Under the pieces are notes generated by a model, which worked only from the letters and a program-made list of their open reading frames with translations, was not told where the DNA came from and made no database searches. DNA of 64,000 nt from Lama guanicoe. Lineage: Eukaryota. The position numbers and the translations under genes are program-made. Below, piece by piece: positions 35,501-64,000 of this stretch (positions are counted from its first letter, which is position 1; each line of letters begins with the position of its first letter). The stretch lies in NCBI GenBank assembly GCA_013239625.1, contig MU055600.1, positions 12,375,010 to 12,439,009 on the forward strand, in the 5' to 3' direction.

Positions 35501-38500
35501 GGAAGGCACAGGGCTGCAGCACACAAGGGGAAGGGGAGGGGGCAGCACAGGTTGGGAGAGAGCACTGCACACGGAGCAGAGGGCACACAGCACACTGGGG
35601 CAGGGGACCTCAGTGTATTCGCCCAACAGGCCCACGTGGGTCTCAACAAGGGAGAGATCTTCTTCCTGTGCATGGGGAGGGTATCAGGAGGGCTGGCTGG
35701 CACACCCAAGGCTCCCTGCTATCTATCCCTCTGCACACACAACTCAACCCTCCACCCCTGCTGACCTCCACGTTGCGCACAGATGGATCTGGGGCTTCCT
35801 CTGGCCAGTCTGGGAGCTCTTGGTAGCCCGTGGCCTTAGCGTTGAGCAGGTGGGACAGTGAGCCCAGCTGGAAGTGGTCCCGGTCTGGGGACAGGGTAAG
35901 AGGTCAAGCCAATGGTGACAGTGAGGAAATTGCCCTGGGACTTGTTTCCTAGGTGAGGCTGGGTGGTGATTCTGGTTGGAAACCCCTAGCTAGACAGAAG
36001 AAAGGGGTGGTCGTGTCCCCTGACGGTACTTCTGCCCTGACTGAAACTTCAGGCCCATATGCTGGAAAAAAGGTTGTATGGCCCAGCTAGAGCAGGACTG
36101 AAGGACAGAAGCAGAGGAGGGCAGGAGGGGACTCAGCTCAGAGCTGCTGCTGGCTTGTCCTCCTAGGTCTACCTGCTGGGGATGCAGAAATGTGAGTGAG
36201 GCTTCTCTTCCAGGGCAGTGGGGACTGTGCTGTTGTAAGTCAAGCTCAGGAAGGAGGCCTACTTGGGACCAGGGTAGCAACTGTGAATAAGAGGTCAAGG
36301 GGCAGGGAGGTGTGTCTGGTCAGGCTCCAGACTTCATGGGGAGGGGTGAGCAGTCCGAAAGGGAGTGGGAGGGAGTCAGGGCCAGAGGAGGGCAATGCAG
36401 AAACTTGTAAGTGGGAATGGTGTTAGAGAGAAGAAAAGGACCATTCCCCTTCCTCCAGGGAGGTTTTCACATCTGCCCCATCCCTCAGAATCTCCCTATT
36501 CCTGAGGTCCAGGGAGGAGAAAAAGCAGAACAAAAAGATCTGCAGGAGAACCAAGCTTGGTGAAGGAGGCTGCCCTCCTGGGTAGGTTCCTGGGTCCAGA
36601 GAGCCAGCTGGAGGACCCTCCCGCTCCCCGCCTCTCTCAGAGCCTTTGACATGGGAGACCAGCCCAAGAAAAGAGGCAAGGCTGAGGGCCTGAGGCCCAG
36701 GGTTTGGGCTGAACTCCAGTGACAGCCCACCAAGTGCTGGCAACTGCTATCATGGGATCCTTACAAACCTACACCTCTCCTTTGTATGGTGTTTTACTTC
36801 CTGTCTTCCTGGGCCCGTGGTATGTAAGATCTGGATATATAGAGCCTGCTCAGGGAGGTGGCTGGAAAGGGGATCCGGAGAGGAGAGACCCAGGTGAGGT
36901 GATGCTGGTGGTGGCTGTGAGTGGGTGAAGGAGCAAGCCCTCAATGCTGCACGTGGGGCAAAGTGCTGGGCCAGGGGGACAGGACTGGCATGTCTCCAGA
37001 AGTCCTGCCCATCACAGCCTGGCACCAGGCTAAAACAGAGCTCTCAGCAGGGAGGTCTGGGACTGGGGTGCCGGCCAATCTTCCTCTTCCCCCATGNNNN
37101 NNNNNNNNNNNNNNNNNNNNNNNNNNNNNNNNNNNNNNNNNNNNNNNNNNNNNNNNNNNNNNNNNNNNNNNNNNNNNNNNNNNNNNNNNNNNNNNNNNNN
37201 NNNNNNNNNNNNNNNNNNNNNNNNNNNNNNNNNNNNNNNNNNNNNNNNNNNNTATCGTAGTTCTGGTCATACTTGGCCAGACTCAGCACATACTGGGTCA
37301 GCAGCTTGGTCTGGGGGACAAGAGGTGGGACATCAGCCATCACAGAAGGTGGGGACACAAGAGCTCTCTGAGCCAGATTCTTTAAGCCAACAGCTCCAAG
37401 CAGTGCCGCCTCCACCCGGTTTTCCCTCCCACCCTGCCACTGTGTCAGACCCTGCATCTTTTCTCACCTCGCCGGCCCTGACTCCTGACCCCAGCTTTGA
37501 TAACTACCATGAGTCAGCAAAAGAGGCTGCCCTTTTGGAATCCTCCCTCTTGGCCCTGGATGCCATTCTTCCTCAGGTTTGTGGTCCCTGCTGCCCCAGG
37601 CCCAGTTCCTACCCCACCTAGTCCAGGCTGGGCTAACCCCTCTACTCTGGGCTGGGGTGCCACAGTGAGTGAAGGGCTGGAAAATTCTGCTGGACCTCAC
37701 AGCTTCCAGGCTCCATCACCCAGGGGAAATTATACAACAAGAAGAGAAAGGAGAACACAGGAATGCCCTCAGCAAGGCCCCACTGACCCACAGAGCAGAT
37801 TCTGAGCAGCCCAGGGGTCTCAGAGGCCATAATCCTCCCCTGGAAGATTCTAACAAGATCAGAGCAAACTGCAACTGCCTATGGGTTTGCTGAAGTCACA
37901 TAGGGTTCATAGTCTGGAGTCAAGGCAGCCATATTCCAGGACCCCAAATCTCAACTTCTGCCCTGATCTGACTAGTCTAACCTGTCTTTAGAAAATGAGG
38001 GTGCTGGCCATCATTTATGGGGTATCCTCTAGTGCCAAGTACTGTGCTAAATGTTTCACTATCTAATGTAATTTCCATAACCCTCCTGAGAGGTGGGTGC
38101 TATTGCCACATCTACACAGAAGCAGACTCATTAAGTCACTTTCCCAGGTTAAGGAGCCAGTCAGTGCTACATCCAGGCCTGGACCCACCAGAGTCTACTC
38201 TGTCTGCTTCTCCCTACTGCTCACCATCCATGGCTGCCCTCATCCAGGTCTCCATCCCTCAGGATCAAGACAGTCAAAACCCACCAAGTACATACATCCT
38301 GTGTCACCACAGCCAGAGTACGTGGGGAGATTCTGAGCGACGGGGATCAGCAAACCAACTCCTGAGGTTTATGGTTACATAGTGTTAGAAAGATGTCCAT
38401 GAGGCACAGAGCCCCAAGATGCTGAACCAAAATCATCTGTTCCACTCCTACCTACAGCATGACCCACGAGGACTTCACGTTCAGCTCAGTCCCTTCCAGC

Positions 38501-41500: not shown

Positions 41501-44500
41501 CTAGTGCCACCAACCAAAGCATCCCATAGAATGACAAAGAGGCCACCTTCAGGCCAGCAGGGATGTCACAGTCTCCAGGGTGTGGCCCAGATGCTTTGCT
41601 CCAAGGGTTGGCAAACTCCTTCTATCAAGGGGCCGAGTAACTATTTTAGGCTTTGCAGGCCACATGGACTCTGCTGCAACTACAACATCCAGACAATAAA
41701 CAAATGAATGAACATGGCTGTGTCCTAATAAAATTTTATTTACGAAAACAGTCAGCAGGCCAGATTGGGCCCGTGGATGGTAGTTTGCCAACCCTGGTCT
41801 TGATTAACTGAGTGGGGCAGTGACTGTGGGAACTGTCATAGTGCTTGGTGTCCCCAATACCTTGGAAAGCTCTGCACATTATACTTTTTTCTCAGCAGAA
41901 TCTCCTGGGACCATCTCAGAGGATGCCGGACACTCGAGAGACTTAATATCCTGGTATTTCAGCTCAGTTGAGCCATGTCCTTGGCTACAGTGCCTCTTAT
42001 AACTTTTCACCTTGGGAATGACAATGGCTGCCAATACCACCCAAGGCTGAGCACAAACTTGCCCTCTTACCCCTGGCACAGACTAGCTAAGCATCACCAA
42101 GCTTCCAGAGGAAGCACAGACCACACCTCCTGGGACACAGAGTCGCCCATCAGTGCCTGTCCCTGCCGGCCCCTCCCCTTGGCCACAGTGTTCTAAAGGC
42201 AGCAGGTAGGGACACTCCCACTGATAGACTGGAAGTCACAACCCCAAAAGAGAGCCTCTTGCACCACCCCTACCAGGCCCTTGGGTCCCCAGAGGAGCTG
42301 TGGACACTGGGAAAACACTGGCTACCTGGGCAGACCAGCCACCTACCCTGAGCTCTCTCTTCAGAAAGAGGTGCTGGAGTTCATGCCTAGCTGGTGAGGG
42401 CCCCCCACTTCTGGGGCTCAGAGTGTTTGAGGAGGCATCTTGCAATCTTTACCTGCTTAGAGTTGGTCAGGTAGAGCTTGGCTGCCAGGTTGATGACCTG
42501 CAGCTTAACAATATCCTCCTCTGCTGTGAAGGACTTGGCCATTTTTCTCAGGACGTCAGGTGCAATCCTGGGGACGTGCTCACAGTATTCACCAATGAGC
42601 CACAGGATGCTGGCTCGGGCCATGGGCACCTGTGGGTGTGGGAGAGGAGTTAGGACTGGGGTAAATGTGAGAATGTTGGAGGGCCTGCCAGGGAATTGGC
42701 ACTCTTCCTATCTGTGCTGACCTATTGTATCATGGGATTCTCTGGAAACGGGGGTGGGAGGTGGTGGGAGAGAGATTATATGGCAAGCATTTCCTGGGCA
42801 GCATCCCCTTCATCCCTAGGGTTCATTAGCATGAGCAGAGCCTTCAAGCCCCCAGTTCAGTCACGGTTTGATATAGAAGATTGCTTTTCTGGATCCATTG
42901 TACCCTTAATGCTTAACTGCCAAGTTATTCTTCCTGAATCTTCAGGAACTCCTTGTTTGAATGTTTCAACTCGGCAGTGTAACAGAAAAACACATGATTT
43001 GTCAATCGGCCACCCTGGGCCAAAGCTTTGGAGTGGTGGTCCAGACTGTGGATGGAGTTCAGCAAGGGATCCCCAAAGGGAAGGTGATTCAGGGTCACAT
43101 GGCTCATCCATCCCCTTCTTCCACCTGAAGACCTTTCAGAGCCAGTATGGAAAGTTTGGAAGCTGATTTTTATTAAGGCCAGTGTTTAACCTAGGGTCTT
43201 AAAATCATGGGGAGGATATTGATGTGGGGAGGGAAATATGGGGTTACTCCCTCACCTGGATGTTGTCTGTGAGCTTTGCCAAGTGTTTGATGATCTCTCC
43301 ATGCTGTGCTGGCTGCATTTGCAGCAGCTTCTTAATGACAACCACTGACTCTGCAACCACGAGCTCTGTGGAACAGGAAATGAGCGTGTGGAGAGGAGAG
43401 TCAGACGATCACACACAGGTAGGCAGACGCACTTGTGATGTCCCCAGGCCCTTGACTCTCTTCCTCAACCTCCTGTACTTCTGCAGGTTCCCTCAGAGGT
43501 GTAGGAGCACTTACACACCAAGTGAGGCAGACAGACTGGTGAACACACACTGCCTGTACAGACACTGGCCATCAGAGTTAGACATGCAGGCAGACACCCA
43601 CTAGTCATTAAAGCTGGANNNNNNNNNNNNNNNNNNNNNNNNNNNNNNNNNNNNNNNNNNNNNNNNNNNNNNNNNNNNNNNNNNNNNNNNNNNNNNNNNN
43701 NNNNNNNNNNNNNNNNNNNNNNNNNNNNNNNNNNNNNNNNNNNNNNNNNNNNNNNNNNNNNNNNNNNNNNNNNNGTGGGACACCACAACAGTGACCCCTC
43801 ATTCCTCAGGCCTAACTCAGCAGTGACTCTGCAGGCCTGAGGGTGACCTTCCAGAAAGCTGTTACCCCTCATTCAATGACTCATCATGCCAGAGAATAAA
43901 CTCCATGAAAAGGAGTGACATCCTCTTCCATTACTCAGTGGTTCCCTAACCCAAAGCCAGCAGAAGGCATTGGGAGGGGAGCTAAGATAGCAGTTTCTCC
44001 ACTTTGGGCCCCTAAGAGAAGGTCTGACCCACCAGGACAATTCTCACTGAGCACAAGGAGCTGTAGGGCAACTCTCCCAGGCCCCTCTGGCCATGAGCTG
44101 ACCCCTGACCCATACCTGGAATTCCCGTAGGACAGTAGGGATGTTGGTCTCATTGGCCAGGTTGGTCAACACTTCGAGCTGCAGGGAGGCAGAAAATGGG
44201 CAGCATGGCTAGTGGGTTTTCTGTGCTTTCACAACCCTTCATTCCAAACACACTTCTTCCAAACACACTTCGCAAGAAAACGATCCTCAGGCAGGACAGC
44301 CCTGTGTCATCCTTAGACTGGTGAGGAAATTGATAAATCATGAAACTTGTCCAAAATGTAGCATGACCAGTTTACTTCTTTAATGGACTCCCTGATAGAA
44401 TGTGCTTACAGTATGATCATGTCACCTCTCTACCTCCAAGAAAAAGGCAAAGCCTCCTATTGCTTTTAGGATAAAGACCAACGTCCTTACCACAGCCTGT

Positions 44501-47500
44501 AAGTCCCCAAATGGTCTGACTGCTGTCCACCTCTGATGTCCCACCATTCCCCTCCTTCCCCTCCCTGCCCCAGGCACACAGTCAGTCAGACCTCTCCTGC
44601 CTCATGGCCTTTGCAGATGCTGTTTCCTCTGTGTGGAGCACGTCTTCCCATTCCTGTCCCTGCATTTATCTGGAGACTTCCTGTTCATTTCTCAGGTCTC
44701 AGCTCAAGCCTCACCTCCTGAAGGAAAACTTCCCTGACATGAGACAAGATCAGGCCCTCCTCTTTCTGCTCCTATATAGCTCTCTGTGCTTTCCCTTCAT
44801 ATCATATTTTGCAAGTGGATTTTTACCTATGTTTTGTGATTAGCTGCTCAATGTCTCCTCCTCACCCCAGCTAGACTGTAAGCGCCACAAGGGCGGGGTG
44901 CCTGACTAGTTTGCTGTCTGTTGTACCCCTCAGTCTAACCATAAGACACAGTAGGTGTTCAGAAGGGTTAGGAGGATTAACTGCTGCTGAATGAAGTCAC
45001 TCAAAAATGAGGAGAGCAGGAATAGAAGGTGAGTATGGGCTCCTGCCACTTTTCCTGTGGGTGTATGTTTGCACGACAGCCTAAGTGGGTAGGCGTGTGG
45101 GAGTGATAACACAGTGGGTGGGAGACAGACTATAATGGGAAAGCATGAATTTTGGAGTCAGCAGACCTGAACTTGGCTAGTTACCTCACCTCCCTAAGTC
45201 TACATTTTTAAAAAGTGGAGAGAATGTACACCTCCTGAGGTTCTCATGAAAGTTTAATTACTTCATATGTGACAAGTGGCAGGTGTATAACAGATATCAG
45301 GCAAAGGACAGCTCCTTTGGCCCTGTCCCCCTGCTTTCATTCACTTGGCTTCCTGGGCAAACATTTGTGACTGGAACAGCAGTGCCAGAATTAGGCAGGC
45401 ACCAAGGTGGCCACTGTGGATATTTGAGTGGGTCGGTGGGGTTGGAGGCAGAAAGGCCACATGCACTTCTGTCCAACACTCACCTTTAGGATCTTGATCT
45501 GGGTGGGGTCGGTGGACCTGATGTAGAAGCTCTTCAGGTACGGCTCGAACATGCCCTGGCACAAGAGAGGCAGCCCCAGGGAGCTCCACCACAGCCCTAG
45601 ACCTGCTTCTCCTCCAGGGCACCCCGCTCCTCTCCTGCCCCAGGGCCCAGTACACTTCTGCCCCTAACTGCCCTCCACTCCTCCATTCTTCCCTCCTCCT
45701 CACACCTGACCCGGTCTTCCTTCACCGGGCTTTCCTCCCTCAGCGGCCCAGGGATCCACGCTCTGCTTCTCCAATTGCTTTTGGGGCCTCCCCTCCCCAT
45801 GCTCTGCACAGCTAAAGCACTCCCCCTTTCTGCCTCCGCCCACCCCCGTGCCCTCAGCCTCGCAGGAGCCAGTCCCCGGACTGCCAGGCCAGACCTTGGT
45901 CACTCGCTCACCCGGCGCTTGATGGACATGGTGGCCACGTTCTGGAGCACCACGTACTGCACCTCACTGTGGAGAGGAGGGGTCAGAGGTACCTGGGCCC
46001 CTCGGCTGGGGTGAGGGGCAGCAGGTGGAGAGAAGGGAGGAGAGCCAAATAGGAGGGAGGAGAGGAGCAGTGTGGGGAGGTCTCCGGTGGCAGGAGGGCA
46101 GGGCTGGGGTCAGTGCGGGAGCTGGTGGGCTAGGGCCCGTGGTGTGATGCGTTTATGGTGCGGGAGAAGTGGGGCAGGCCCGGGCCCAGCCCCCGGGTGT
46201 GGGCGGGGAGGGCGCCCACCTGTGGCTGCGCAGCAGGCGCACGAGGGCCTTGGNNNNNNNNNNNNNNNNNNNNNNNNNNNNNNNNNNNNNNNNNNNNNNN
46301 NNNNNNNNNNNNNNNNNNNNNNNNNNNNNNNNNNNNNNNNNNNNNNNNNNNNNNNNNNNNNNNNNNNNNNNNNNNNNNNNNNNNNNNNNNNNNTTTCGGG
46401 CGGGCAGAGCTGTGGCAGTCGCCTCCTCCGACCCCGGGCCCTTGGCTTCATCCTCCTCGGAGCCGTAGAAGGCCTTCTCAGGGTTCTCCTCCAGCAGAGA
46501 CTCCTGGAGAGGGAGACAGGTGGGGCACTGGGCACCTCCTCCAGGCGACCCTCCTACCCACACTGCCGGGCGAGGGTGGGGGTCCCGCCCACTCACGTTC
46601 TGAGTGGGGCTCAGGAACTGCGTGCGGGCGTAGCGGGTGAGCATGCTGATGATGACCACCTGGCCCCACTCCTCCACGTCGATGAGCAGGTTACAGAGCT
46701 TCCGGTAGTTCTTGTGGATCAGGTCAATGCGCTCCGGGCACACCTCCTCGAAGGCCATCACCACACTGCCTGCCACCAGCTGGGGAACCAATAAAGGCAA
46801 GAGAGCATGAACGGGGACGGAAGGGCCTCTGCCTGGCACCTTTCCTCCATGCAACCCTGTACGTCTGTATACGCACCGTGGTCTTGTCGGCCAGAAGCTT
46901 CTCAATAACCTCTATCAGCTGGTCCTTCTGGTCAGAATCCAAACTGAGGGAGAAATTGTTGAGAAGAATTTGCCCCTCCCCCCATCTCCAGCCTTCCTAA
47001 TATCTGCCAAGCTGTGTTCACCTCCCTCACCCCAACCCTATTCACAAAGAGGTGTGAGCCACTGCCTCCAGTGTCCTCCATCTGTCAGTTCCCCCAAACT
47101 ATCTTAAACCATCTGAAGAGTTTTTTTTAAGATGGCAGCCTGCAAGACTTGGGAGAGGGCAGGTGAGGGCCGGGGGCTTGGGGTATACCTGTAGAGCTTA
47201 GGGATGGCATGGGCAGCTGTTTTCCTCACGTAGGGTGACATATCTGAGGCAGCTTCCTTGATGGCCAGCATCATGATGGGCACTATGATGGGCACACGGA
47301 TGCTAGAGAGGACGCGGAGGGCACTGGCACGAATCAGCTGGTTGGGATCCTAAGGACAGAGGTGGAGGCAGAGCCATGGGAGGGCAGCAGGTGGCCCGAT
47401 GGGAGAGGCCATACCTATGGAACTCACTGTTCCTAGTTAACACCAGCTCTTACTTCCCTGACTGCTGTCTTGAGCCTGGATGATGTGCTAGTGCTGGGTA

Positions 47501-58600: not shown

Positions 58601-60318
58601 CCTCCTATCCTTGGCTTACTTTTTCTCAGTTGCCTTGAGACACTTTCCCTGCTCTCTGGTCACCCTTAATGTCCATGTCTTCAGGGTTCACACCCATGCC
58701 CTGTGAACTTATTTTACTGCAGGCTGTCTAAGTTATCTTCACTTCGTTTTGTGGCTTTGATTGACATATATATACATACATATATATATATACATACCCT
58801 AATAATCTCTCCTGGAATCCAAATCCTAACACCCTAGGACTAGACTTGAATGTACCTCAGAGTTTACAATCTCGGCATGTCAAAAGCTGGGCTCAACATT
58901 ATTTTCCACAACTTTGCTTGTAATGACTTTATTTCTAGTTACACTGTATGGTACCATCATGTGTCCGCTGCAAGAACTAGTAACTGGAGTATTATCCTTA
59001 TCTTTTCCTGGCCCCTTCCTCTCCCCTCCCCTCCCCTCCCAAGTTATCATCAGGTCTGTGGCTTCTACCACTTCAACAGCCCTCAAACCCTCTTAAACTT
59101 AGGCCACCATCATGTCCCCCCTCCTCCAATTTCAACATCCCCTCACTTGTCTCCTGCTCAGTCCAGCACATTCCTTCTCCACAATCCAGCCTGGCATCCT
59201 TCTAAAATGCTAATCTGCTATTGCCTGTTTAAAACTCTTCAGCGGCCACAGCCACCTCCAACCTTGGCGTCTCCTCACCTATATTTCTGGTCACTCCTGG
59301 GGGCTTGCTCAGAGATTCTGGCCACATTGTACTAACACCTACAAAACCTGTGACCAGGCTCTCCTTCACCTCTTTCCTCTGCCTGAAACATACCTCGCTC
59401 TCCCCCTCTCCCTTCTCTCCAGGCCCAGGGAACAACTCCTCATCCCTCTGACTGCCCCCACTACACTGAATCGTCACTGACAGAATCTTCCCTGTGTTCC
59501 CCTCTAGACAACTAGAGGACGTTCTCAAGAACTGAACCATGCTCACGGCTGCATTTAGTGACTAGGACAAGGACAAGGCCCTTAAAAAATGCTTGTTTCA
59601 GAACTCACGAATAAACGAATTAACGAACGAATGAGCCAAAGGTAAAAGGGAAGAGTGGTAAGCACAGGGGCAAAGTAGGGACCATAGTGTGGGCGCCAGA
59701 GTGTAGATGGGGATGAGAACACGGGGACCAGAATGAGGGAAAATGGACTGTAGGAGGGGCCAGGCCTGGGAGGTTCTGAGTATGTATCCAGCACCGTCCT
59801 TCCCGGACAGGCCCGCGGCTCAAGCTCGCCGATTCTGGCCCCTCCCCTACGTTCTTTCAGGGTCAATTCGTCACGCGCGGAAAAAGGCGAGGACCCTGTG
59901 ATCCAAACCTACAAACAGGAGAAATCCTGGGGTTGGTCCTCCAGAAACGGAGCTGGCTAGCCCATCCCCCACCAGCCTCCAACTCCCTTCCCGGGTTCCA
60001 GGCCGGCCCCTCCGAGCAGGGCGCTGGCGTGGGGACGAGGGTTGCAAGGGTCGATGCCCGCTGCGGGAGGGGGCTTCCGGTCCGCGGCGCCGGGGCGGGG
60101 CATGGGCTGGGCCGCAGCGGACGGGCCCAGGCGCTGTCCGTGGTACCGGAGCGCGTCTCCCGCTGCGGCGCCGGGTCTAGCCACCCTCTCGGCGGGCTCC
60201 CTCACCGCTTGTAGTCGGAGGAGAAGATGCCGCCACTCGCCGGGTCGTGGCCGTACTCGGGCTCCCCGGGGCCCGCAGAGCCGCCCTTGTCGTCGCTGTA
60301 GGCGGGGGCGGCCGACAT
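29426..60318 (-). CDS. AP3B2: AP-3 complex subunit beta-2, 27 coding exons, ~3312 nt / ~1103 aa including the 57-nt cassette exon
   Basis: Starts [38 protein letters not shown] and ends ...[22 protein letters not shown]. All visible exons have GT-AG boundaries with consistent phases. Exon 12 (133 nt) and the 3' part of exon 15 (187 nt total) are inferred under N-runs from the recalled orthologous protein. Confidence 0.98.
29670..29808 (-). CDS. AP3B2: AP3B2 exon 26 (139 nt)
   Basis: [45 protein letters not shown]. Confidence 0.95.
31112..31428. mobile_element. MER58-like hAT MITE
   Basis: TTGGCAAATTAC ... TTTTATTGGAGTACAGCCAC ... TTGGCTGACCCCT. Confidence 0.75.
32307..32404 (-). CDS. AP3B2: AP3B2 exon 25 (98 nt)
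   Basis: [32 protein letters not shown]. Confidence 0.95.
32631..32715 (-). CDS. AP3B2: AP3B2 exon 24 (85 nt)
   Basis: [27 protein letters not shown]. Confidence 0.95.
33112..33340 (-). CDS. AP3B2: AP3B2 exon 23 (229 nt)
   Basis: [32 protein letters not shown]...ISIQEFPEI (ear domain). Confidence 0.95.
33543..33649 (-). CDS. AP3B2: AP3B2 exon 22 (107 nt)
   Basis: [35 protein letters not shown]. Confidence 0.94.
33741..33761 (+). promoter_or_regulatory. RE1/NRSE (REST site) in AP3B2 intron 21
   Basis: TTCAGCACCATGGACAGCGAG versus consensus TTCAGCACCACGGACAGCGCC. Confidence 0.85.
33979..34039 (-). CDS. AP3B2: AP3B2 exon 21 (61 nt), clathrin-box
   Basis: [20 protein letters not shown] contains the LLDLE clathrin-box motif. 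Confidence 0.95.
34182..34362 (-). CDS. AP3B2: AP3B2 exon 20 (181 nt)
   Basis: [20 protein letters not shown]...[10 protein letters not shown]. Confidence 0.92.
34695..34818 (-). CDS. AP3B2: AP3B2 exon 19 (124 nt), Ser/acidic hinge
   Basis: [40 protein letters not shown]; donor |GTAAG. Confidence 0.92.
35179..35287 (-). CDS. AP3B2: AP3B2 exon 18 (109 nt)
   Basis: [36 protein letters not shown]. Confidence 0.95.
35609..35665 (-). CDS. AP3B2: AP3B2 exon 17, symmetric 57-nt cassette exon
   Basis: [19 protein letters not shown]; phase 0/0; matches the recalled 19-aa insert of the long isoform. Confidence 0.85.
35766..35884 (-). CDS. AP3B2: AP3B2 exon 16 (119 nt)
   Basis: [39 protein letters not shown]. 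Confidence 0.95.
37124..37310 (-). CDS. AP3B2: AP3B2 exon 15 (~187 nt; 3' end hidden in N-run 37097-37252)
   Basis: [19 protein letters not shown] visible; lower coordinate inferred from the recalled orthologous exon length. Confidence 0.8.
38280..39120 (+). mobile_element. Decayed Ty3/Gypsy integrase fossil (antisense in AP3B2 intron 14)
   Basis: Motifs in the expected order: [21 protein letters not shown] (38578), [21 protein letters not shown] (38838). Confidence 0.7.
39230..39773 (+). mobile_element. MLT1 (MaLR) solo LTR
   Basis: CCAATAGAATATGGCAAAAGTGA, GAACTGAATCCTGCCACCAACCA, ends GCAACAGAAAACTAATACA. Confidence 0.85.
41602..41796. mobile_element. MER58A hAT MITE
   Basis: TIRs CAAGGGTTGGCAAACT ... 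AGTTTGCCAACCCTG. Confidence 0.85.
42453..42629 (-). CDS. AP3B2: AP3B2 exon 14 (177 nt)
   Basis: [59 protein letters not shown]. Confidence 0.96.
43256..43365 (-). CDS. AP3B2: AP3B2 exon 13 (110 nt)
   Basis: [37 protein letters not shown]. Confidence 0.95.
43619..43774 (-). other. AP3B2: N-run expected to contain AP3B2 exon 12 (~133 nt); exact boundaries not visible
   Basis: Exon 11 ends in phase 0 and exon 13 begins in phase 1. The missing TYIRSMDKDF...SNRD segment is not visible elsewhere between them, and the 156-nt N-run can hold it. Confidence 0.75.
44116..44178 (-). CDS. AP3B2: AP3B2 exon 11 (63 nt)
   Basis: [21 protein letters not shown]. Confidence 0.95.
44350..45010 (+). mobile_element. 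L2 3' fragment
   Basis: GGCCTTTGCAGATGCTGTTTCCTCT, CTAGACTGTAAG..CCACAAGGGC, ends TGAATGAA. Confidence 0.7.
45484..45555 (-). CDS. AP3B2: AP3B2 exon 10 (72 nt)
   Basis: [24 protein letters not shown]. Confidence 0.95.
45912..45966 (-). CDS. AP3B2: AP3B2 exon 9 (55 nt)
   Basis: [18 protein letters not shown]. Confidence 0.95.
46220..46503 (-). CDS. AP3B2: AP3B2 exon 8 (284 nt, interior 46254-46393 is N)
   Basis: [19 protein letters not shown]...[N]...[10 protein letters not shown]; frame preserved across the N-run. Confidence 0.92.
46597..46779 (-). CDS. AP3B2: AP3B2 exon 7 (183 nt)
   Basis: [61 protein letters not shown]. Confidence 0.96.
46877..46943 (-). CDS. AP3B2: AP3B2 exon 6 (67 nt)
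   Basis: [22 protein letters not shown]. Confidence 0.95.
47189..47349 (-). CDS. AP3B2: AP3B2 exon 5 (161 nt)
   Basis: [53 protein letters not shown]. Confidence 0.96.
47900..48900 (+). mobile_element. L3/CR1 LINE reverse transcriptase fossil
   Basis: [13 protein letters not shown] (~48000), IPDKILE (~48055), [13 protein letters not shown] (48293-48331). Confidence 0.75.
49240..50040 (+). mobile_element. 5'-truncated L1 (end of ORF2 plus 3' UTR)
   Basis: CATATGACCCAGCAATTCCACTCCTGG motif, A-rich tail, TSD-like AAAAAAGCTGTAAT / AAAACAGTTGTAAT. Confidence 0.9.
49568..49601. repeat. (AC)17 microsatellite inside L1
   Basis: Perfect dinucleotide run. Confidence 0.95.
50132..50341. mobile_element. 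MER58-like hAT MITE
   Basis: AGGTTGGCACACTAC ... GTTTGCTGACCACTG. Confidence 0.7.
51016..51078. repeat. 21-bp tandem repeat (ACTCCATTCTAGAATACTTGA x2 plus a degenerate third copy)
   Basis: Seen directly. Confidence 0.85.
51817..51912 (-). CDS. AP3B2: AP3B2 exon 4 (96 nt)
   Basis: [32 protein letters not shown] (adaptin N-terminal motif). Confidence 0.96.
52202..52276 (-). CDS. AP3B2: AP3B2 exon 3 (75 nt)
   Basis: [25 protein letters not shown]; AG/GT. Confidence 0.96.
52421..52496 (-). CDS. AP3B2: AP3B2 exon 2 (76 nt)
   Basis: [25 protein letters not shown]; CAG| and |GTGAG. Confidence 0.96.
52681..53132 (+). mobile_element. MLT1C-like solo LTR
   Basis: TGTTATGGGCTGAATTGTATCCCCC ... CCAGAACTGTGAGACAATAAATTTCTGTTG ... 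CAGCAGCCCTGGAAAAC. Confidence 0.9.
55290..55805. repeat. CA-rich low-complexity tract (UG-rich in the AP3B2 pre-mRNA)
   Basis: ~500 bp of degenerate CAC/ACAC/CAGACAC units. Confidence 0.85.
58560..59635 (+). mobile_element. L2 fragments
   Basis: Pyrimidine-rich L2-like segments ending in a (GAAT/AACGAAT)n tail at ~59608-59632. Confidence 0.6.
60130..60150 (-). promoter_or_regulatory. RE1/NRSE-like site at the start of AP3B2 intron 1
   Basis: Minus strand TCCGGTACCACGGACAGCGCC, 18/21 match to consensus with a perfect right half. Confidence 0.7.
60206..60318 (-). CDS. AP3B2: AP3B2 coding exon 1 (113 nt)
   Basis: ATG at 60318; MSAAPAY...SSDYKR; donor CG|GTGAG. Confidence 0.96.
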
Positions 60319-61851
60319 GAGGCAGCAGAGGAGAGAGCTTCGCTGGAGAGGAGTTGGCGCGGCCGGGATGCGGCTGGGGTCGAGGAAGGGAACGCAGTCC
60401 GGGAAGGCGAGGTCGGCGGCGCGGCCCGCGCTCTGCAGAGGCAGCAATCTGCTGTGGCGGAGGCAGCGCGTGGATTTATCAATCAGGGCGGAGGGCGTTG
60501 AGGTTCTTAAAGGCACCAGCGCCTGCGGAGCGGAAGGCGGGTCCGTGGGGGGAGCGGGAGGGGAGGTGCATCAGGGTCTAGCCCCGCCCCAATCCCTCGG
60601 AAATCAGCCCCGCCTCAACCCCGTAAGGAAGGTTCCTGACCCTTTAAAGGTCTGGGGGTAGGTGGAAGTGCCTGGACTGATGATGGGACAGACTTCCAGG
60701 ATGTCAAACCCACTCCAGAACACCAGGTCTCAGTGGTATGGCTTCTAGGAAGCTCCGCTCATTCCAGACTCAAGAGCGGATACTCACCCACACAATGAAA
60801 GAAAAGGTGGGGTGGGGTGGGGGGTTAAGAGAAAAGCTGTGCCACAAGACTGAGACTGAGGGTCCTACAGCAGGAAGGAGGCACTGCACCCTGAGACTGG
60901 GTCAGAGACCAAGGTCGGTCCCTCTCCCCACTCCATTTTTCCTACAAAATCTGGGCCCCTCTGACAGCGTCCTATTTTCTTACCAGGAAGCCAGGGACCT
61001 CCCTGGAGATGATGGAATTTAAGGAAGGCTGAGGAGCTTACATACAGCAGGCTGCTGTAGATGTAGATGCAGATGTGGAGAGATGGGGAGAGAATAGCGG
61101 GGGCGGTGAACCCTGAATTCAGCTTCGGAAAATAGTTTAATGACCATTTCCGAAGCCTCCATGCCCACCTTGGCATGCCTGAGGTCATGGCTAGTCCATA
61201 GTCAAGTCCACATCCACTGACACCTAGGAAGGAAGGAAAAGGGAAGAGGCTGAGTTAGGGTCTGGTATGATTGCCAAAATTCTTGAATCATGTGAGGCCC
61301 CCGGTTCATCTCCCAAAGCCCAAGGTACCCCAAGGAAAGATGGCCTGGGTCTAGAGGGAAAGTTGTGAGTGGGCTGGAGAAAGGAGTGGGATCTAGTTGA
61401 ATTAAGGGCAATAGGTTGAAAAGCTGGGATCTCTTGCCTGGGCTTGGGGGAGGAGGTGAGGAAGACTGGATTCAGAGAGCAAAAGGATCCACAGGGCTGA
61501 GTCCTGATCTCCAGAATCAGAATTGGTGGGCCTGGGTGGAGATGGGTGAGGCCTGGAAAGGTGGAGCTTTGGTTCTGTACATGGGTTCCACTGGGGAATG
61601 GGAATGAGGGTTGACCAGGACCATGGCAGCGCTTGGCTGAAGTAGGCTGAAGTAAATAGATATGCCCAGGACCTGTGAGCTGGGATCTTTCTGCAGTGGC
61701 CCCAAAAGGGTTTCAGAGTAGAATCTTAACGAGTTAACAGGCCTAGCTTGCTTCTGGGGGCTTTGGGTCTACCAGAGTAAAGTAGATTTTGAGTTTGAGG
61801 AAGGTGACCCTGGGTGGGGAGGGAGGCGTGAACTCTGCAGCAGCAGATTGG

Positions 61852-63010
61852 TTAGCTGCATTTGTTAACCGGCTCTGGAGGTGGGGTGGAGTCCTGGGTG
61901 GGTAGCTGAGCTGTGCTCACCGGGCTAGTGGGACTCTGGTCTTCTTGTAGGGGGTCCAAGCTGAGCAGATGTAGTGCAAAGTGCACACCATTGCTCCGCA
62001 TTGGGTGATAGGAAGGTGGGTCAGCGTCCATGGCTTTATGTACACAGCACTCTAGCACAGAGTGGTCAATCCCCCTGCATTTACGCAGCATGTGCCAAAG
62101 CCAGTGGGAGCACAGCACCGGGCGCTGCCCCTGTTTAGATACAACACCTTCACAGTAGCCCAAAAATGTGTGCAGCTTGTGGCCACCAGGATTCTTGCCT
62201 ATGGGGATCACCCGACAAGTGTGAATCAGAGCTGAGCTTAGGTCATGTGACTCCAGCCCTAAGATCTCACACCCCCATCTCCCAGGAGCCGGTAGCCCTG
62301 CGCCACATGCTCTGGGCCCCCAAGCACCTGTCTTCAGGGACCTGTGCCATCTGCCCTGACCCACAGTCTTCATCCCCATGAAGCCCCGCCCATTGATGGA
62401 GTGGCGCTTGATGGGAAGCCTCTGTTCCAAGACAAGGGCCCTGTTTCAGCCAGAGACACTCACCCTGGAAGTGGATGATCTCTCCTTGGCCACAATACAC
62501 GCCCACATGGGCCCCGCACCAGCGTCCAGTGGGGGACATCAGCCTGAACAGGAAGAGGTCTCCAAGCTCAGGTTGGCTGCCCTCCAACTCCACAGCCTCA
62601 AAGAGCTGACCTAGGAAAACCTCAGATAGGAAGAACTTAATGGTGCTGACTTCCCCAGTTGGAGCCTGGAAGGAGGAATGGACCAGACCGCTGGGTTTTT
62701 GCAGGCCAGGATGAAGGAGAATCCAGTTCCTTTCACTGGTCATTGGGTTAGATGGGCTACCTAGGCCTCAGGGAGTCCTGGCTGGGGGCTAAGCCTGAGG
62801 TGAATGTCTTCACTATCCCACACCTGCCTCCTTGTGCTGAGGAACTTCAGAGGCCTGGACATCATGGATAAATCCTGCCCTGAGCCACCCTTCAGTTTCC
62901 AGCAGTTGGGACCTCCTCATCCAACATTTTCTTCCCATCTCAAATTCCAGCCTCTCCATCCTCTTCCCCTCCCCATCCTCTAGAATCCCCCTTCCCCAGT
63001 CTTCACCCAT
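61852..63010 (-). CDS. Divergent LRAT/PLAAT (HRASLS-like, permuted NlpC/P60) protein; exons 62464-62610 and 61852-62198, start uncertain (ATG 63010 in a micro-exon, or in-frame ATG 62743); catalytic Cys replaced by Gly, possibly a decaying pseudogene
   Basis: PELGDLFLFR...HVGVYCGQGEIIHF resembles PLAAT PKPGDLIEIFR..HWAIYVGDGYVVHL; YHPMRSNGVHFA resembles YxLxxxNCEHFV; phase-1 GT-AG intron 62199-62463. Confidence 0.7.
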
Positions 63011-64000
63011 CTTGCCATTCTCTGGAGGCAACACTGGGGACTGCTTATACCTAAGATGAGCAGAAGTCCTAAAGAAAGAGAGAAACCTGGGTGAGATCTA
63101 GATCCAGGACAGGCATCTTTTCCCAAGTCTGAGTGAGAGAAGACTCCTCCAACAGCCTCAGCTGCCAACATCTATTGAGCAACTGCTCATTTGATGCTTA
63201 ATATGATCTGACAAAATGGGTACACTATTCCCATTTTCAGGATAAAGAAGCCAAGGTTCACAGAAGTTATACATTGCCAGAGTACACACAGCTTAATCTA
63301 TGCCTGTGTGACTGTTTCTTGTGCCCTCTGTACTAAACATAAGTCACCTCTCTTATCTCCCTTTCCTCTACAAAGTAATGAGAAATGCATTTAGTTCATA
63401 TTTCTTCTACCTTTACTGGGAACAGAGGGCTTTGGAGACGGGAGGATGGCCTCCTGGGCTGTGCCTGAGCTTTGGTCTCAGAGAAAGCCTGAGAAAGGGG
63501 GTAAAAGTAGGGCCCGTTGAGCACTGAGCCATCTTGAGCTGGCAGAGGAGCTGGGAGAAGGAAGTGGCCCATTCACTGCTCACCCCTCTCCAGGTCTCTA
63601 TCTATTTTGGAAGGGAGGGGATTGACTCCAGCAGATATAACTTGGTGGGAAGGACCCACATACAAATGAGGAGCAGGGATGCCCAAGCCACACTACAGAG
63701 TGCCAACCACTGTGTGTGGCTCTCTGTGTCTCTCCTGTCCCCTGACCCTCTCCTTCCCTCCTGGCCTCAGTCCATAGTATCCTCTACCTATTACTGGGTG
63801 AGTCACATTTTCCCAAACTGGGAGCTGTGAAAGACTCGGGGGACCAACTCATCCCAGTCTTCCTGGGGCCTTCCAGGTTTGTAAAACTGAAAACCTTACA
63901 TCCCAGGAACCCAGCAAAATTTGGACGGCTGGTCACCTTAGGCTCAGTCCTCCTGTCTCCCATCTCTCTCTTTACCTCAGGAGACCACAGGAGGACCTAT

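Follow-up and report, generated by a model that had tools for sequence, protein, structure and literature searches.

In a 64,000-nucleotide stretch of the Lama guanicoe genome (assembly GCA_013239625.1, contig MU055600.1, positions 12,375,010 to 12,439,009 of the forward strand; hereafter the window, numbered from its first letter), we found a three-exon LRAT/PLAAT-like gene on the minus strand, with about 0.6-0.7 kb between its end and AP3B2 exon 1, which lies downstream. On sequence grounds the gene is the window species' orthologue of mouse 'cDNA sequence BC048679'. However, the position of the catalytic nucleophile, a cysteine in every orthologue, is occupied by glycine in the assembly sequence (GGT 61989-61987, giving S-N-G-V-H-F). 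The reading we favour, with a probability of roughly 0.6, is that the window copy is transcribed, catalytically dead and under relaxed constraint, in other words an early unitary pseudogene with its frame still open. Decay is favoured because the nucleophile is lost, the acceleration is confined to the exon of the catalytic core, the copy of a close relative is frameshifted, and no annotated protein model from a close relative was found in the databases searched.

In PLAAT/LRAT enzymes the cysteine attacks the acyl ester of a phospholipid and forms a thioester acyl-enzyme. The BC048679 protein of most species contains the PLAAT His-His-Cys set, and by analogy its cysteine would form the same intermediate. 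Cys is invariant at the nucleophile position in the 39 aligned family members (C144), and a census of 123 C-boxes in all fetched family proteins gave 118 Cys, five Ser and no Gly. Because the nucleophile is Gly in the window, this copy would be incapable of acyl transfer by PLAAT/LRAT chemistry, although its splice sites and frame are intact.

The features of the locus are as follows.

62464..62743 (-): coding exon 1, read through from the ATG at 62743, encoding MTSERNWILLHPGLQ...IIHFQ and ending with base one of a Gly codon that the intron splits; the PELGDL box, the two His residues and a conserved helix at the N-terminus (STIKFFLSEVFLGQLFEAV) all lie in it.
62666..62667 (-): AG of a strong alternative phase-0 splice acceptor, tcctccttccag-GCT, with the first exon base at 62665; P0012 (a close relative's sequence, see below) leaves the window sequence exactly here, at .../APTGEV.
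62507..62509 (-): first catalytic-type His codon (GAHVGVYCG), invariant in the 39 family members (H59 of the jerboa orthologue P0008) and placed on a His of the PLAAT chain in the profile alignment.
62471..62473 (-): second His codon (EIIHF), 12 residues after the first.
62199..62463 (-): intron 1, phase 1, from GT 62463-62462 to AG 62200-62199, with the same junction in the orthologue models and P0012.
61921..62198 (-): coding exon 2, KNPGGHKLHTF…SNGVHFALHLL…QSPTSP, with the eroded Arg-rich helix and the C-box.
61987..61989 (-): nucleophile-position codon, GGT = Gly, N-G-V-H-F-A-L here and N-C-x-H-F-A-L in the family.
61224..61920 (-): intron 2, phase 0, donor CCG/gtgagc (GT 61920-61919, last exon base 61921) and acceptor AG 61225-61224.
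61191..61223 (-): coding exon 3, GTG TCA GTG GAT GTG GAC TTG ACT ATG GAC TAG, encoding VSVDVDLTMD and the stop.
61136..61141 (-): ATTAAA, a likely polyadenylation signal from a pattern scan, about 50 nt past the stop.
63007..63010 (-): ATGG, followed by gtgaag to 63005, the candidate start micro-exon of an original prediction made from the sequence alone; outside the supported gene model.

The two large exons evolved at different rates. Exon 1 showed 63-89% identity with the orthologues over its core, against a mean of 75% among the orthologues, and its terminal branch in the per-exon maximum-likelihood trees was 0.12, equal to the median of 0.12. For exon 2, identity with the orthologues was 47-68%, against an average of 67% among the orthologues themselves, and the terminal branch was 0.50 against a median of 0.21 (about 2.4x); only Apodemus (0.54) and one further sequence (0.57) had longer branches. 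The orthologue consensus RSRSLWRVLRRRGGIDRAALERRVREAM is replaced by CSHWLWHMLRKCRGIDHSVLECCVHKAM in the window. Exon 2 has lost nine consensus Arg residues: Cys and His each took the place of four, and Lys of one. Changes of the types T>M, V>M and A>V also occurred. The changes from Arg to Cys or His, together with T>M, V>M and A>V, can be read as what CpG transitions would be expected to produce in CGN-rich codons, and the CpG observed/expected ratio in the window exons was 0.19-0.29.

Apart from one sequence, P0012, no match from any source in the exon 2 search exceeded 66% identity; thus the search yielded no annotated model of this protein in species closely related to that of the window. 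P0012 is a 152-amino-acid (aa) open reading frame (ORF) on a 1.4-kb Logan contig, in which exons 1 and 2 are already spliced (…IIHFQGKNPGG…) and the window's derived residues QPELGD, HFQG and GHKLHTFLGYC are present. It contains a frameshift inside exon 2 and then a stop, and the tail that is out of frame shows 100% identity with the +1 frame of the window over 23 codons. Its N-terminal 32 residues differ and have no map position inside the window. Because P0012 shares the derived residues, the erosion would be older than the split of the window species and the source of P0012, and the relative's copy appears disrupted. Two other Logan fragments, as far as their sequences can be read, give a hint that in mammals this gene may have decayed more than once or is spliced aberrantly: the bovid-like P0053 has lost the first His (GATLVYCG) and has EPELGD in common with the window, and in P0026 exon 1 is followed by a stretch of exon 2 that is out of frame.

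A hint of transcription came from RNA sequencing (RNA-seq) data. In four 'reproductive system' runs from one study, 15-29% of the sampled words of 61100-62760 were present, an interval of which the three exons account for about 41% when exon 3 is extended as far as the poly(A) signal region; DNA runs of one organism contained 78-86% of the sampled words of the same interval. Mouse BC048679 was the most up-regulated gene in the ESR1-knockout oviduct, at 222-fold (PMC4725743), and showed an 8.3-fold fall in the uterus from day 3 to day 4 of pseudopregnancy (PMC5131473). The word signal of the window gives a hint in the same direction as these oviduct and uterus data.

Several observations weigh against decay. 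Similar Arg erosion was found in buffalo, which keeps the Cys, so CpG loss alone is no proof of decay. Private changes at otherwise invariant sites numbered four in the window, and the orthologues ranged from 0 to 6. The rate of exon 1 was ordinary, and no damage was seen in the frame (about 196 codons), the ATG, the four splice sites or the stop; the gene is therefore compatible with a protein still in use. In addition, P0012 could be a retrocopy.

Such a protein might be a functional pseudoenzyme, still produced and kept by selection for something other than catalysis, for example the binding of lipids or partners or the regulation of PLAAT-type enzymes, with the change from Cys to Gly being an adaptive or tolerated switch and not decay. 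We consider this unlikely, though it deserves to be taken seriously. Catalytically inactive members exist in the LRAT/NlpC-P60 superfamily, and the non-catalytic NlpC/P60 protein RipD was listed in the fold search. The intact frame and splice signals, the ordinary branch length of exon 1, the C-terminal exon VSVDVDLTMD kept at 9 of 10 residues and the part of the locus contained in RNA runs would all agree with a selected protein. However, the fast-evolving part is exon 2, the core around the active site, and it is also in exon 2 that the near relative's sequence (P0012) is frameshifted. Gly was found in none of the 123 family boxes, and thus nothing points to a clade in which Gly is conserved.

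We regard it as improbable that the enzyme is still active or the glycine unreal: GGT might stem from a fault in sequencing or assembly, or be a minor allele of TGT, or a substitute Cys might serve as nucleophile (the new Cys residues of exon 2 or the Cys of GVYCG being candidates). GGT is one T->G change from TGT, and four Cys were gained in exon 2. On the other hand, the proportion of sampled words contained in DNA runs of the same organism indicates that the assembly is broadly reproducible, and many other derived changes of exon 2 are common to P0012 at the DNA level, so the divergence is real. The nucleophile of PLAAT/LRAT enzymes lies at the N-terminus of a specific helix, and given this fixed position a substitute elsewhere is unlikely. 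Finally, a chance open frame or an untranscribed dead relic, which might be suspected from the upstream region 62744-63400, where we found no CpG (observed/expected 0.0) and no CpG island, is very hard to reconcile with homology at E 1e-30 over three exons with conserved splice phases, with the words contained in RNA-seq runs and with the spliced exon 1-exon 2 sequence of P0012.

The gene model was obtained by tblastn of orthologues onto the window together with the letters of the window itself, and the window exons were searched one by one. Exon 1, taken from ATG 62743, is collinear with P0007, a muntjac model, beginning at that model's first Met (95 residues aligned at 79% identity, E 7e-46). 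The original prediction had placed the 5' boundary of this exon at 62610 (the frame 62608-62465 (-) translates as QLFEAVELEGSQPELGDLFLFRLMSPTGRWCGAHVGVYCGQGEIIHFQ), which proved too short: the conserved peptide STIKFFLSEVFLGQ, in the family form TGxVSTIKFFLSE(A/V)FLGQ, extends in frame upstream of 62610 and is present in the orthologues. The start had instead been sought in the ATGG micro-exon, with possible N-myristoylation of the resulting MGQ... protein. The letters are present, yet no aligned orthologue begins Met-Gly-Gln and the conserved N-terminal helix would be removed; we rejected the start at 63010, and the proposed myristoylation is left unsupported along with it. From the sequence, exon 1 would start either at ATG 62743 or by an upstream exon spliced to 62665. 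MSF(T/I)SQ precedes the point equivalent to 62665 in several orthologue models, jerboa and buffalo among them, and no MSF(T/I)SQ-like start exon was found in 62744-64000, searched to the window end; an upstream exon joining at 62665 is either beyond the window end or lost.

The phase-1 intron between two minus-strand exons, as first proposed, was confirmed by reading the junction letters directly. The donor is CAG G/gtgagt with the last exon base at 62464, and the next exon follows ccccatag/GC at 62198; the product reads ...IIHFQ-G-KNPGG... and the frame is open through to the TAA at 61854-61852. The same junction (...HFEGKNP...) is used by six orthologue protein models. The spacing of 12 residues within the His pair (codons 62509-62507 and 62473-62471) was likewise correct. 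The second His is kept in mammal and bird members, and some divergent members, among them P0128 from the fish Astyanax, have E, D or Q instead. As for the NxxHF box, the Cys-equivalent position does lie 73 residues past the second His as had been noticed, but the box lacks its defining cysteine and reads SNGVHF.

The 3' end had been placed at the TAA 61854-61852. Orthologues instead splice from 61921/gtgagc to a 10-codon exon at 61223-61194, so that exon 3 had been missed; if intron 2 is retained, the frame runs to this TAA and gives the C-terminus first proposed. Nine of the ten residues of exon 3 are identical to the horse C-terminus VSVDVDLTVD (tblastn), a polypyrimidine tract and AG stand in front of it, and the tail is kept in horse, muntjac, rabbit, beaver, jerboa and gopher. 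The supported product has 93 + 1 + 92 + 10 = 196 codons, and all splice sites and the reading frame are intact in the window copy. The form with intron 2 read through was matched by buffalo P0005 and the Logan ORFs P0001 and P0003, ending ...PVNK(CS), and on this sequence likeness the tail may be a conserved alternative C-terminus. The window read-through tail (61852-61920, -) ends ...EPVNKCS before the stop, an ending identical in P0003, which is otherwise only 57% identical; the ending of P0001 (...QPVNKQG) resembles it.

Exon 2 with the read-through tail to 61855 (114 aa) matched 12 mammalian proteins among 5.8 billion sequences, at E 1.5e-30 to 9e-7. Because exon 2 alone matches mammalian proteins at E 1.5e-30 to 2.7e-17, the homology is far beyond chance. 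The named matches were horse F7AUU7 ('LRAT domain-containing protein'), jerboa 'cDNA sequence BC048679', Bubalus LOC123465227, rabbit LOC127487727, and Muntiacus and Castor models. The window exons were collinear with the orthologues over three exons, with reciprocal best similarity to the BC048679 group, and in the per-exon trees they fell inside the mammalian orthologue clade, separated from the bird members with 100% support in the Shimodaira-Hasegawa-like approximate likelihood ratio test (SH-aLRT). Mouse BC048679 presumably lies beside Ap3b2. The gene and its family label are already known in public databases, under placeholder names only. Hence the description of the gene as unnamed held as regards a proper name or a PLAAT/LRAT-type symbol, but the gene is already in the databases as BC048679 and under other placeholders. 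Our literature search, in which Lratd3, PLAAT6 and 'LRAT domain' with Ap3b2 were also tried, revealed no proper name, function or biochemical study of BC048679; in the mentions consulted it figures only as an entry of an expression table or in a list of primers.

A profile of six orthologues found 144 family representatives (50% clustering, E<=1e-3) in 1.84 billion proteins. Members came from mammals, birds (a Falco 'LRAT domain-containing protein' and two-domain proteins of pigeon) and fish (an Astyanax 'LRAT domain-containing protein'). The invariant columns of a 39-member alignment were the GD of PxxGD, the first His, an Ile, and the N, C and F of the N-C-x-H-F-A-L box; the order His...His/polar...Cys box was held in all 39 members. 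Pfam LRAT was matched by 37 of the 39 at E<=0.01 (best E 2e-12), with the bird and fish members above the cut-off of 24.3 bits (25.7-47.9 bits) and the six mammalian orthologues slightly under it (17.6-23.5 bits). The window exon 1 piece alone, which is too short to decide, gave only sub-threshold matches to Pfam NLPC_P60 (E 7.6e-4 to 0.0024) and LRAT (E 0.065-0.26), and the exon 2 piece alone gave no Pfam LRAT match. The weakest matches of the orthologue profile were canonical LRAT-domain proteins (74-332 bits).

Against the PDB, the family profile matched PLAAT2 (4dpz, E 7.7e-7), PLAAT3 (2kyt, 4dot and others, about 1.3e-6 to 1.4e-6) and PLAAT4 (2.7e-6) over the whole domain, and the family Cys aligned on the Cys of the NCEHF box of the PLAAT2/3 chains. 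The profile of the orthologues only gave weak NlpC/P60 matches (best E 0.0068), and the PLAATs were reached only with the wider profile of the family. Comparison of an AlphaFold model with PLAAT3, which had been suggested as a check, was carried out on the jerboa orthologue P0008 and not on the window protein. With the 39-sequence alignment as input, AlphaFold2 gave a predicted local distance difference test score (pLDDT) of 85.2 and a predicted template-modelling score (pTM) of 0.79; with six sequences the pLDDT was only 45. The best eight Foldseek matches to the model were all PLAAT2/3/4. Alignment by VIA-align with the PLAATs gave Z 11.2-12.1 and a root-mean-square deviation of 2.5-3.4 A over 97-111 residues, and the classical NlpC/P60 rows Z 5-8. 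Among the nearest ESM Atlas clusters, 29 of 30 were LRAT. The LRAT/PLAAT-type assignment first suggested was thus borne out by the Pfam matches, the PLAAT2/3/4 profile matches and the fold Z scores, and as judged from profiles and the model the gene belongs to a clade of the LRAT/PLAAT superfamily (H-box/NC, circularly permuted NlpC/P60) that spans the vertebrates.

Compared with the PLAATs, residues 6-27 of the P0008 model form an additional helix at the N-terminus. The maximum 19-residue Kyte-Doolittle mean was 1.16 in window exon 1 (the helix) and 0.35 in exon 2, and the scanned orthologues reached <=1.62. In agreement with the earlier statement that no C-terminal transmembrane helix is visible, this 19-residue scan revealed no C-terminal hydrophobic tail or transmembrane anchor among the window pieces and scanned orthologues.

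The window shares with the BC048679 orthologues (mouse, horse F7AUU7, Bubalus, rabbit, Castor and Muntiacus) the three-exon structure, junction phases and tail exon, and also the N-terminal helix, PxxGDL, His-12-His, Arg-rich helix, DADPPxYHP and C-box. It differs from them in the Gly where Cys is invariant, in the replacement of about nine Arg, and in lacking the MSF(T/I)SQ start of several models. With the catalytic domain of PLAAT1-5 (HRASLS) the clade shares the permuted His...His...Cys order and the fold, at 23-26% identity for the jerboa orthologue model, and the profile alignment spans the domain from PGD to NC-x-HF. However, the BC048679 clade is separate from PLAAT1-5, has no C-terminal transmembrane helix and has the extra N-terminal helix; its box is NC(V/I)HFAL instead of NCEHF, and the window copy is without the Cys.

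Bird and fish members were fitted best by the Pfam model LRAT (PF04970), with scores of up to 47.9 bits, and an HRASLS3/LRAT chimera (4q95) was matched at E 2e-4 and Z 8.2. The LRAT-specific insert and terminal transmembrane helices are absent from the BC048679 clade, however, and the mammalian orthologues stay below the Pfam cut-off. Bacterial NlpC/P60 (MepS/Spr, 2hbw), YiiX C92, TseH and Aichivirus 2A gave Z 6-8. The PGD...H...H half matches the profile of classical NlpC/P60 proteins (E 7.6e-4 for the window exon alone), but there the Cys comes before the His residues and in the BC048679 clade after them, and the likeness is at superfamily level only.

Tentatively, and with somewhat less than even confidence, we might speculate that the BC048679 clade is a distinct unstudied PLAAT/LRAT branch, anchor-less and helix-capped, with some bird paralogues possibly N-terminally lipidated, which would be active in most vertebrates, steroid-regulated in the female reproductive tract and repeatedly lost in mammals. 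If this is true, the window copy with its Cys to Gly change, the frameshifted relative and the bovid-like fragment without the first His would serve as natural knockouts for finding the function. The vertebrate-wide PLAAT-like clade, with its invariant His/Cys set, is uncharacterised despite very strong hormonal regulation in mouse oviduct and uterus. PLAAT enzymes make N-acyl-phosphatidylethanolamines and degrade organelles, and an unstudied soluble relative could interest lipid biochemists. The locus itself provides a corrected three-exon model for the window genome and a natural active-site knockout carried by the window lineage; to the family the window adds only a lineage-specific loss.

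Three members, P0078, P0089 and P0095, whose bird label is a guess from similarity to named bird proteins, begin MGSSSS(K/C)..CC. This is Met-Gly-x-x-x-Ser with Cys-Cys, typical of myristoylated and palmitoylated proteins, and such an N-terminus was found in no mammalian orthologue. Judged from these sequences, the family may reach membranes by N-terminal lipidation in place of a C-terminal helix. Tandem two-domain versions were found in P0013 (vole), P0040 (pigeon) and P0041-P0043, and the second domain of the vole P0013 has Ser at the nucleophile position (NSVHFAL).

The gene body of the neighbouring AP3B2 contains three runs of N, at 37097-37252 (156 bases), 43619-43774 (156 bases) and 46254-46393 (140 bases). 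AP3B2 exon 1 and its CpG-rich promoter (about 60200-60520, -) start about 0.6-0.7 kb downstream of the poly(A) signal of the LRAT-like gene, with a CpG observed/expected ratio of 0.70 over 60200-60900.

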